Shown one piece after another: positions 13,558 through 23,232 of a stretch of DNA of 49,274 nt. The notes under the pieces were generated by a model, which ran no database searches, was not told the origin of the DNA, and worked only from the letters and a program-made list of their open reading frames with translations. The position numbers and the translations under genes are program-made. This DNA comes from Salpingoeca rosetta (lineage: Eukaryota > Protista > Choanoflagellata), in assembly GCA_033442325.1 (NCBI GenBank), contig JAWQFM010000007.1, positions 1,724,045 to 1,773,318 on the forward strand. Reading direction: 5' to 3'. The number at the start of each line of letters is the position of its first letter. Position 1 is the first letter of the stretch.

Positions 13558-16500
13558 CTCAGAGTTAGTGTTGCCATTCACACGAGAGCGCTGAGACAGA
13601 AGGATATATGGCAGATGCCTCGCACCGAGGAGGACAGGAAGCGAGCACGCAAACCAGACAAACGAACATACGCACAAACGAACACACCCAGAGCCACAGA
13701 CAGACGAACTCTCCCTCTCAAACACACACACACACACACACACACACACACACACACACACACACACACACACACACACACACACACACACACACACAAA
13801 CATACACGCACACACGCACGCACACACACACACACACACACACACACACACACAAGAACACACCTTCTCTTCGTAATGAGCAATCCTGCGCAGGCGGCGC
13901 AGCTTTTCGTGTTCGTTGTTGAGGTCGCTCTCGAGCTTGAGCACGTTCACTTGCGTGGCCATCAGCAGCCGCTTCGCATCGTTCTCAGACAGTGAGCCAT
14001 AGTCCTGCAAACAGCAAGCACCATCAACACAAGCAAGTGCATAGCGCTGTGGTGAGACCATGCACGGCAGACAAAGCACGCCCACATACACACAAGATAC
14101 GGGACGGGTGCAAGGATGCGTTCGACTGACGTCAAAGTGGACAGAGGCCAGCTCCAGCTCCTTGCACTCGCGCACAGCGGCAAGAATTTCGTGCACTGTT
14201 TGCTTGAACTCCTCGCTCAGGCGATTGATCTGACAGCGCACGCATGCGTTGTGTTGCGTTGTGTGTGTTGTGATGTGTTTTGTGTGTGTGTGTGTGTGTG
14301 TGTGTGTGTGTGTGTGTGTGTGTGTGTGTGTGTGTGTTGTGAGCAAGGGCAGCCTGTCACGCACACACGACACCACGTTGCATTGCGCATGGTGACGCCA
14401 ACAGCACCAGCAAGAAACGACACGTCATGCCAGGCAGGAGACAAATGCCCCTTACATCTGCCTGCGAGTGGTCGCCGTTGGGCATGCTCTTCGTGCGAGA
14501 CAGAGCAGCCAGTTGCGCTACAGACGCAGACAAGTTTCTATACACACACACACACACACACACACACACACACACACACACACACACGAAAGCGTTCACA
14601 GAGAGAGTCGCGTTGTTGTTGTTGTTGTTGTTGTTGTTGTTGTTGTTGTTGTTGTTGGTGGTGGTGTCATAAGTTGGAGTTAGATCAGTGAACAAAGCAC
14701 GTGGGCAAAGAAAAAATGGGAAGAAAGGTGCACTTGCATACATGGCGAAGCACTGTTTCATTTGACGCAATGGGTGATGCATCGGGGATACACCGTGTGA
14801 ATGATGCAAGCCCTATTTTCTTGCACTCACTCAAGCACATGACAGAAACTAACCTGGCGCTGACTTGCAATTCTTCGTGTTTGCCTTGTTGTCGCACCAC
14901 CTGCAAGCACGCGTCAGGGAACACAACAAGAGAAAGATGGGATCAATGCGCGTCAAGTGAAGTGAAGTGAAGTGAAGTGAAGTGAAGTGAATCCGTAGAA
15001 GGGGACTACATGTTCGCAGCAATATCCTACCGAGCGAAGTGATTCAGTGAGGACCGGGTTGTGTTCCACCATGGCGTCGACAGCGGTGGTGAGGCCCTGG
15101 AACCATGAGCTGTGCTTCATGTTGAACTGCAGAGCAATCAGGTCAATCAACGAACAGCATAGGGTGAGTCGCCGCCGTTTTCGGGTGTTGTGGTGGGTTG
15201 TCCAACGAGCACACAGTCTTCCCAAGCAAAAGATGCGTGGCCAGCATCCATCGTCATGACCACGGGTCATCAGAGACCCACTCACTTCGTCTTCGCTCTG
15301 CATGCCGCGGGTGTTCTCCAGTGCATCTCGCATGGCGTCGGCAGCAGAGATCAGCCCTTCCATCACGTCCATCAGCTGCGCACATGTGCACACGCATACA
15401 CAAGAAGCACATGAGTATGAGCGAATCCGACAATCCGCAACATACAGTAACAGCACACACACACACATATACACACAAGAGGACAAAGTACAAGTCACGT
15501 TCACCTTTGTGGCGAGGCCAAGGATGTTGGTGTTGACTTCCAAGCGTCGACCTTTGTCTTTGCCCTTTGTCTCCGCATCCATTTTCTGAATGTGTCCGCG
15601 CGTGTCCAGGACAGACTGCACACAAACAACCAAACAACACAAACAAACAAAACAAGCAACACATGACAGGACGATGAGATGCACAGCAGGTGGCATGGGT
15701 GCGGGCACATAGTGGCAGAACGTCCGGGGGGGGGGGCGGCAGATGCGTGTTGCCGCGACCGGAGCACGCATGTATCATCTGCTGCCCTACCTGTTGTGCC
15801 GCAGTGACTTTGCCCTCAATGCCCTCAGCCTGTACCGAGCGGGTGAAGCGGGTGAAGCGGGTGGAGAGGGAGAGAGATGACACCATGGGCACCAATGCAC
15901 ACACCATTCTTTAGTTCGGTGCATGAATGCAAGGAACGTGAGCCCAGGCACACACACACACACACACACACACACACACACACACACACACACACACACA
16001 CACACACAAACTACGACCAGCATGACGATGACGACGACCAGCACGACCAGCAGCAGCAACAAAGACAAACCACAGCAGCACACGGACCAGAGCGTTTGAG
16101 AGGGAGGCGAGTTCGCGGTCGCGGGCGATGACGGCCTTGGCCGCCGCCGTCAGCGACTGCAGCGCAGCAGCAAATCGCTTGCCTGATGGTGGTGGCAAGT
16201 GGTGGTGGTATGTGGTGGTGAGTGGCGGCGGGTTACATGTGACGTACGCGCAGCGCGCTGAAGGGAGCACAAGCAAGGTGTCGGCATGTGAGCATGTGTT
16301 GGCACCTGCTTCGTCCAGGGAGGGTGCAGGTGTGGCAGGCTGCGTTGCCGGCGGCTGGCTTGGCGACGCAGACCGCTGCTGCCGCTGTGGCGACGATGGC
16401 GCAGAGGCGGCATCCGATGTGGACGCGGCCGAGGGGTCCGCCGGCTTGAGGTACGAGGTTGGCGCCCAGCCCTGCTCAGAGCCCTTGACCACCTTGCACC

Positions 16501-22500: not shown

Positions 22501-23232
22501 ACATATGCACACACACACAGGTGCACACACACACACACACACACACAGGTGCATACACACACACACACACACACAGGTGCATACACACACACACACACAG
22601 GTGCATACACACATATGCACACACACACACACACACACAGGTGCACACACAGGTGCACACATACACACATACACACATGCCCCGTCTTACTGTCTGTCGA
22701 CGGCGATGGAAGCCATCTCTGAGTCACCAAGACAGGCAACAAACTCCTCGATGACTTGGTCTTCTTTCTTTGCAGTCCACGTCAGCAACGACTTTGTTGC
22801 CTGCGGCGAGAAGCATGTGTGCGATTGTTGAGCTTTGTTGCGGGCATGATTGCAGCTGGACGAGGTGTTCACATGCATGCGCGGTGCAGCGTCCACACAA
22901 ACACGAAGCGCGCACATGACGCAAGCACACGGGTGCATACCCGCCATATGCTTCGCAGCTGCCCCTCCATACTCAGACACACACAGGCACACACAAAAGA
23001 ATGCACACAGGTTCATAAACACACACACACACACACACACACACACACACACACACACACACACACACACACACACGCAGGCACACAGATACAAAGAGGC
23101 ACGCACTCGCTCTTGCTGCCGAACACGGGAATCGAGGGCGCTGGCGAGGTCTTTGAGCTCGGAGTAGACGTTCAGGAGCTCGCCTTCCTCGGCCAAGGCG
23201 TGGGCCGCCTTGCGCACAGCGTGGGTTGCCAT
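13558..23232 (-). CDS. Large multi-exon HIP1/Sla2-related protein: BAR-like N-terminus, coiled coil, SH3, C-terminal I/LWEQ (THATCH) domain
   Basis: I/LWEQ exons FNMKHSSWFQGL, GKHEELQVSAR..SASVAQLAALSRTK and DYGSLSENDAKRLLMATQVNVLKLESDLNNEHEKLRRLR. SH3 at 16606-16445 (MVALYDH...GFKKGDVMTLIRKRDDGWCK...GWAPTSYL). Helical N-terminal exons at 21000-23232. The stop probably lies in the gap 13458-13557, and the start codon is tentative. Confidence 0.75.
16706..17658. repeat. (GA)n microsatellite flanking an assembly gap (N 16811-17548)
   Basis: Pure (ga)n on the left and (ga)/(gaca) mix on the right. It reads as (CT)n on the sense strand of the intron before the SH3 exon. Confidence 0.9.

Follow-up and report, generated by a model that had tools for sequence, protein, structure and literature searches.

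Can a curvature-sensing membrane scaffold be wired directly to F-actin through an I/LWEQ (THATCH) tail? Two textbook systems, HIP1R/Sla2 and talin, couple a membrane-binding head to F-actin via such a tail, and a family headed by a BAR domain would be a third mode of this coupling, with a curvature-sensing scaffold as its head. The question is raised by a locus of Salpingoeca rosetta, which lies in a 49,274-nt stretch of contig JAWQFM010000007.1 (assembly GCA_033442325.1, positions 1,724,045 to 1,773,318; this whole stretch is hereafter called the window). An initial annotation, made from the letters alone, had read there a possible new membrane-actin adaptor that combines BAR-like, coiled-coil, SH3 and I/LWEQ regions in one gene. 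We found that the gene is PTSG_03783 (window 23232-13565, minus strand; 891 amino acids, 27 exons). With a probability of roughly 70%, we consider it to encode a HIP1R/Sla2-type membrane-actin linker in which a divergent Pil1/Lsp1-like BAR domain takes the place of ANTH, and an SH3 domain with a Ser/Pro linker lies between a Rend-like bundle and THATCH.

PTSG_03783 was retrieved by a length-aware search with an 808-codon stop-free stretch holding the SH3 domain, which also gave two EukProt transcripts whose Pfam content is identical to that of PTSG_03783. The annotated protein (P0001) fits the 27 minus-strand exons exactly, with the ATG at 23232 and the stop codon at 13567-13565. The locus is broken by two runs of N (N-gaps), so the model could be suspected of fusing two neighbours across them, a coiled-coil gene and an SH3-I/LWEQ gene. 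Both gaps are intronic, however, and both introns that bear them are canonical (GT..AG) and in phase. The gap at 19393-19492 lies between the exon end at 19660 and the exon start at 19324, with the donor GTGATA, the acceptor ..GTAG and the split codon AG|A of R354; the gap at 16811-17548 (738 nt) lies between 17782 and 16606, with the donor GTGAGT, the acceptor ..CGCAG and the split codon CA|A of Q507. The splices predicted earlier across the two gaps, EVN-R-LEE and KKKQ-Q-MVALYD, are exactly those of the annotated model. Orthologous transcripts align across the 19660 to 19324 junction with zero indels. The 17782 to 16606 junction falls in a variable linker, where the closest relative, Microstomoeca (79% identity over the N-terminal 300 residues of PTSG_03783), differs by two residues, and because it differs by only two, an exon hidden inside the 738-nt gap seems very unlikely.

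The same order of domains was found outside this assembly. Scored against 1.84 billion representative proteins, a profile built on the first 300 residues of PTSG_03783 matched 72 of them. Seventeen of the 20 longest matches (559-1094 residues) carry I/LWEQ at the C-terminal end, and it was not found in the remaining three (P0011, P0044 and P0060). The named long matches are complete open reading frames (ORFs) from de novo transcriptomes of Choanoeca perplexa, C. flexa, Hartaetosiga balthica, Microstomoeca roanoka, Salpingoeca macrocollata and S. urceolata, and the M. brevicollis genome holds a counterpart, MONBRDRAFT_36287, that is collinear with PTSG_03783. Seven orthologous complete transcriptome ORFs and the M. 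brevicollis model share the BAR-like, SH3 and I/LWEQ regions, and paralogues without SH3 likewise have this N-terminal domain and I/LWEQ in one protein. Since complete collinear ORFs are present in other choanoflagellates, the architecture cannot be a fusion created at this one locus by assembly or annotation, and we regard the two-gene explanation as extremely improbable. The annotated model, the canonical in-phase splices and the collinear orthologous transcripts therefore support PTSG_03783 as one real gene, as the initial annotation had proposed. A weak hint of expression came from 14 small contig sets, in which 17-100% of the words sampled from the SH3 exon were present (all of them in 8 sets); none of the 14 appears among the sets that contain the intron at 21421-21667, and the labelling of these sets as RNA is a guess.

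In the C-terminal half of the protein, Pfam matched I_LWEQ (PF01608) at residues 722-871 (9.4e-35), and the best PDB matches of this domain were HIP1R (1r0d, 4.2e-16) and Sla2 (9hdd, 7.5e-11), with no talin chain among the best 60 PDB matches listed for PTSG_03783, in agreement with the earlier view that the domain is HIP1-like. The nearest full-length proteins outside the family are animal HIP1/HIP1R, with about 30% identity. When Pfam was run exon by exon on raw stop-free segments, only the SH3 domain and a partial I/LWEQ were obtained. The region upstream of SH3 also belongs to the HIP1 architecture. In End4p/Sla2/HIP1R a rod-like bundle called Rend regulates force transmission to THATCH (PMC11476202). 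Residues 346-476 of PTSG_03783 were modelled by AlphaFold2 as four helices (predicted local distance difference test, pLDDT, 93); hhalign aligned them with HIP1 residues ~636-774, immediately before THATCH (92%, E 6.8e-7), and an exhaustive structural aligner, VIA, placed them on Sla2 REND (9hdd_B) with Z 10.1 and 20% identity, the highest identity among the top 46 rows. A Foldseek search with this bundle gave no significant match. The alignments show that residues 346-476 are homologous to the Rend domain upstream of THATCH in HIP1R/Sla2, and that the C-terminal half as a whole, the Rend-like bundle together with THATCH, is homologous to that of HIP1/HIP1R/Sla2.

The SH3 domain noted earlier just upstream of the HIP1-like region was detected by Pfam at residues 510-557, both as SH3_1 (3.6e-7, 30.1 bits against a cut-off of 22.9) and as SH3_2 (6.5e-7, 29.4 bits against 21.8); it carries the motifs ALYDH, GWCKV and GWAPTSYL and also matched SH3 entries in PDB. 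It is followed at residues 563-608 by a linker that has 9 prolines in 46 residues and varies among orthologues. Because the next helix (609-639) corresponds in alignment to the HIP1 helix after the Rend-like segment, SH3 and the Ser/Pro-rich linker appear to have been inserted into a Rend-THATCH unit of the HIP1R type. Preceding the bundle, residues 236-345 matched no Pfam family and were modelled with helices at 229-277 and 282-299; the clathrin-light-chain-binding coiled coil (PF16515) was not detected there by Pfam, and a helical segment is present.

What, then, is the head? The initial annotation had seen no ANTH or FERM motif and had suggested a BAR/Pil1-type fold. Pfam matched no family in residues 1-300 of PTSG_03783, and neither ANTH (PF07651) nor FERM was matched even at E<=5 in PTSG_03783 and two transcript relatives. 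An AlphaFold2 model of the N-terminus, built from three sequences (pLDDT 78), has three long helices (16-54, 57-127 and 133-203), followed by a short hairpin and one more helix; the helices are antiparallel and kinked and span ~200 residues, as in BAR domains. A conserved beta-hairpin and a P-x-W..GE motif come after the third helix (residues 204-235). The top 50 Foldseek matches in PDB all belong to the BAR superfamily (SNX1/5, BIN2, Pil1/Lsp1, amphiphysin, arfaptin and F-BARs). With VIA, about 30 of the first 31 rows were BAR domains, covering residues 13 to ~215. The best of them was arfaptin (Z 14.5, root-mean-square deviation (rmsd) 2.7 A over 183 residues), followed by SNX5 (Z 13.6), Lsp1 (13.5), APPL (13.5) and Bin1 (13.0), and the superpositions of classical BAR domains and Lsp1 had rmsd values of 2.3-3.6 A for 172-196 residues. 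Searches of the Atlas by shape and by features pointed the same way, to F-BAR, amphiphysin, BIN3, FAM92 and arfaptin clusters, and the shape search gave plant SH3P2-like BAR-SH3 proteins at a template-modelling score (TM) of 0.76. An N-terminus of the I-BAR/IRSp53 type was considered and rejected, I-BAR structures superposing poorly (rmsd 7.5 A). For long helical bundles a Z of about 13 does not settle the fold, and we therefore base the assignment on the agreement among the match lists; on this basis the model shows a BAR-superfamily fold for residues ~13-220, and the proposed BAR/Pil1-type N-terminus was supported by the model, by two independent fold searches dominated by BAR and by profile matches to Lsp1/Pil1.

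These profile matches came from searching N-terminal family profiles against 177,635 PDB sequences. Yeast Pil1 and Lsp1 were the top four matches in three profiles of different composition: one of all 25 members (A6; best E to Lsp1/Pil1 2.6e-4), one of the SH3-less members (A8; 7e-5), and one of 21 family sequences only, the named ones choanoflagellate and the rest environmental ORFs (A9; 0.016). A three-sequence N-terminal profile found nothing in PDB. In the register of the profile, position 29 falls on Pil1 66, which is consistent with the structural superposition (model 16 on chain 55). Five basic residues line the lipid pocket of Pil1 in the cryo-electron microscopy structure of the eisosome, K66, R70, R126, K130 and R133 (PMC11324527). 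In a weak HMMER alignment the conserved K27 stands opposite Pil1 K66 and the conserved K92 opposite K130, while T88 is the counterpart of R126, and R133 coincides with a gap of 7 residues beside K98/K99. The Pfam Pil1 model (PF13805) matched 2 of 25 relatives, both below the cut-off (best 6.4e-4), and left PTSG_03783 itself unmatched. A stand-alone protein of 261 residues from the clam Tegillarca granosa (P0075, KAJ8303887.1) matched the choanoflagellate N-terminal profile in hhalign (96.7%, E 3e-10) and Pfam Pil1 at 6.4e-4. By its sequence it seems to bridge the choanoflagellate domain and Pil1, and it hints at divergent Pil1-like BAR proteins in animals.

Several observations weigh against a linker with a Pil1/Lsp1-like, membrane-binding head. 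As the aligner itself warns, Z values of 13-14 for long helical bundles may mirror a common arrangement, and the structural match of the 346-476 bundle is likewise unspecific, p130Cas, talin R7R8 and designed bundles scoring alike. The Pfam BAR and Pil1 models all stayed below the cut-off on PTSG_03783, a profile of the SH3 clade alone (A7) found neither BAR nor Pil1 in PDB, and the N-terminal domain is near neutral overall (net charge -2, isoelectric point 6.1). Could the domain then be a generic member of the BAR superfamily, its Pil1 matches being a chance likeness of coiled-coil-like sequences? The E-values are indeed weak (0.016 once the mollusc sequence is left out), the SH3 clade by itself yields no Pil1 match, and arfaptin, SNX and APPL superpose as well as Lsp1. 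Against this, Pil1/Lsp1 hold the top four places in three profiles, the sequence register is concordant with the structure alignment, and the clam protein ties both sides independently; we therefore think a lack of any special Pil1/Lsp1 kinship unlikely.

The domain might instead be BAR-shaped without being a membrane binder, serving as a dimerisation or partner module (for example, binding a small GTPase as arfaptin does) in a cytosolic SH3/actin scaffold. That arfaptin is the best structural match speaks for this, as do the lack of a Pfam BAR match and the absence of an overall basic charge. Helix 2 nevertheless bears a conserved basic stripe (K92, K98/99, K109/110, K120/121 and K128), two lipid-pocket positions of Pil1 appear to be conserved, the affinity in sequence is to the membrane-scaffolding Pil1/Lsp1 and not to arfaptin, and the domain sits where HIP1R has its lipid-binding ANTH head. 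With these points in view, we judge a purely cytosolic role to be quite unlikely, and keep to the membrane-actin linker with a Pil1/Lsp1-like head as the best explanation.

How widely is this architecture distributed? The combination of BAR, SH3 and I/LWEQ in one protein was found only in choanoflagellates. When C-terminal regions were placed in a tree with three animal HIP1/HIP1R sequences as the root, the BAR-I/LWEQ family was separated from them with an SH-like approximate likelihood ratio test (SH-aLRT) value of 100 and resolved into three clades. Clade A, with SH3, contains PTSG_03783 and the M. brevicollis, Choanoeca, Hartaetosiga and Microstomoeca sequences; clade B, without an insert, includes S. 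rosetta PTSG_13008; clade C, which includes P0021, P0026 and P0030, lacks SH3 and carries a proline-rich insert in the loop that holds SH3 in clade A. Every named full-length member of this three-paralogue family is a choanoflagellate. Both S. macrocollata and S. urceolata are represented in each of the clades, which indicates an old origin of the paralogues among choanoflagellates. Runs such as PPPP occur in the clade C inserts, whose loop corresponds to window 16304-16606. We rejected the possibility that clade C retains a degenerate SH3, since its inserts are proline-rich and gave no SH3 match. It is possible that these inserts are SH3 ligands at the same structural position; a shared loop beside Rend-THATCH, holding SH3 in clade A and the proline insert in clade C, would permit force-dependent or inter-paralogue SH3-proline coupling.

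HIP1/HIP1R/Sla2/End4p are built as ANTH, coiled coil, Rend and THATCH. Like HIP1R/Sla2, PTSG_03783 has a long coiled coil, a bundle directly before THATCH and an I/LWEQ of their type, and it appears to follow the same logic of a head that binds membrane, a rod that dimerises and a tail that binds F-actin. Unlike them it has a BAR fold and no ANTH as its head, and SH3 with the linker (~130 residues) separates the Rend-like bundle from THATCH; the clathrin-light-chain-binding domain of HIP1 was not detected by Pfam, and the I/LWEQ of the family forms its own clade against the three animal HIP1/HIP1R sequences. With Pil1/Lsp1 it shares the three-helix BAR fold (Lsp1 rmsd 3.6 over 188 residues), and they are its best PDB sequence matches, although its sequence match is below the Pfam cut-off; conserved basic residues stand, in the weak alignment, opposite K66 and K130. 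Pil1/Lsp1 occur as separate proteins, have a disordered tail and assemble into lattices on furrows, whereas the domain here heads an 891-residue I/LWEQ protein predicted to bind actin. Amphiphysin/Rvs167, endophilin, plant SH3P2, PACSIN and IRSp53 similarly have a BAR-superfamily head and then SH3, but none of these adaptors has I/LWEQ/THATCH, and they reach actin indirectly by SH3 ligands or a WH2-like tail. Talin, too, ends in I/LWEQ/THATCH after helical rod bundles; PTSG_03783 differs from it in having no FERM head and one rod-like bundle instead of 13, and its I/LWEQ is nearer to HIP1R/Sla2.

How might such a protein work? The BAR domain and the following coiled coil would dimerise, and the BAR dimer would sit on curved, acidic-lipid-rich plasma membrane via the conserved basic stripe of helix 2. 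The THATCH tail would bind F-actin, and the Rend-like bundle between head and tail would bear force, transmitting or buffering it as in End4p/Sla2. SH3 would recruit a proline-rich partner, conceivably the clade C paralogues too. The protein would most likely act at invaginations formed in endocytosis or phagocytosis, or on the membrane from which the collar microvilli rise, so that, as the initial annotation had put forward, it may be a membrane-bending, F-actin-binding scaffold of endocytosis or of the collar. A further idea, possible though doubtful, is that choanoflagellates rebuilt the HIP1R/Sla2 force linker on an eisosome-type, Pil1-like BAR domain, perhaps even replacing the canonical protein. 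If so, Pil1-type BAR domains would be older than fungi, and curvature scaffolding would be wired directly to F-actin within one polypeptide. To our knowledge, Pil1/Lsp1 have been described only in fungi. M. brevicollis was listed as lacking canonical HIP1R in a 2012 survey (PMC3473312).

As for novelty, all the component domains are known; what is new is their combination and its restriction to one lineage. In the literature searched, we found no paper that describes this family or mentions its locus tags or its architecture. The sequences themselves were already public under uninformative labels ('hypothetical', 'SH3 domain-containing' or 'I/LWEQ domain-containing'). The idea of a new adaptor thus held for the architecture and not for the sequences: the novelty is one of interpretation. 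Two elements go beyond the initial annotation, namely the Rend-like bundle between coiled coil and SH3 and the assignment of the gene to a family of three paralogous clades. Choanoflagellates, the only organisms in which the family was found, are the nearest living relatives of animals and rely on the coupling of actin to membrane for their feeding collar and for phagocytosis. The family also suggests that divergent relatives of Pil1/Lsp1-type BAR domains exist in Holozoa, with the support of one stand-alone mollusc protein. S. rosetta is genetically tractable, so functional tests are feasible.

Features of PTSG_03783 in the window (positions counted from the first letter of the window)
Feature	Exons, residues	Window position (strand)	Remarks
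Pil1/Lsp1-like BAR domain	exons 1-6, 1-235	21030..23232 (-)	exon map, AlphaFold2 model, fold searches, profiles
Long helical, coiled-coil-like segment	exons 7-10, 236-345	19687..20573 (-)	exon map, model
Rend-like four-helix bundle	exons 10-15, 346-476	18189..19686 (-)	span includes the intron with N-gap 19393-19492
Basic linker	exon 16, 476-507	17782..17877 (-)	ends KKKQ-Q; donor starts the intron with N-gap 16811-17548
SH3 domain	exon 17, first part, 508-562	16442..16606 (-)	Pfam and PDB matches
Variable Ser/Pro-rich linker	exon 17, remainder, 563-608	16304..16441 (-)	
HIP1R/Sla2-type THATCH with I/LWEQ and C-terminal helix	exons 18-26, 609-874	13864..16180 (-)	helix ..KLRRLRRIAHYEE
Annotated last exon and stop	875-891	13565..13618 (-)	doubtful; not conserved; 10 nt from N-gap 13458-13557
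Dinucleotide tracts		13722-13854, 16706-16810, 17549-17658, 19328-19386/19498-19578, 20720-20891, 22479-22677	in introns; (AG)n at 16706-16810

The window as a whole is eukaryotic, with about 55% G+C, introns rich in (CA)n/(GA)n and six N-gaps. Long tracts of (AC)n, (GT)n or (AG)n occur in nearly every intron of PTSG_03783, and a GTGCGT-type intronic repeat at 20055-20091 resembles a microsatellite. Both internal N-gaps are flanked by dinucleotide tracts, which probably caused the breaks in the assembly. A third N-gap lies just 3' of the stop codon. The annotated last exon (13618-13568) encodes 17 residues, and orthologues stop 0-10 residues past YEE. Because this exon is not conserved and lies so close to the third gap, the extreme C-terminus of PTSG_03783 is uncertain and its true 3' end may be mis-annotated. 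On the plus strand, an acidic, coiled-coil-rich ORF of 667 codons (11429-13432) ends about 130 nt from the stop of PTSG_03783 and is probably a convergent neighbour gene.

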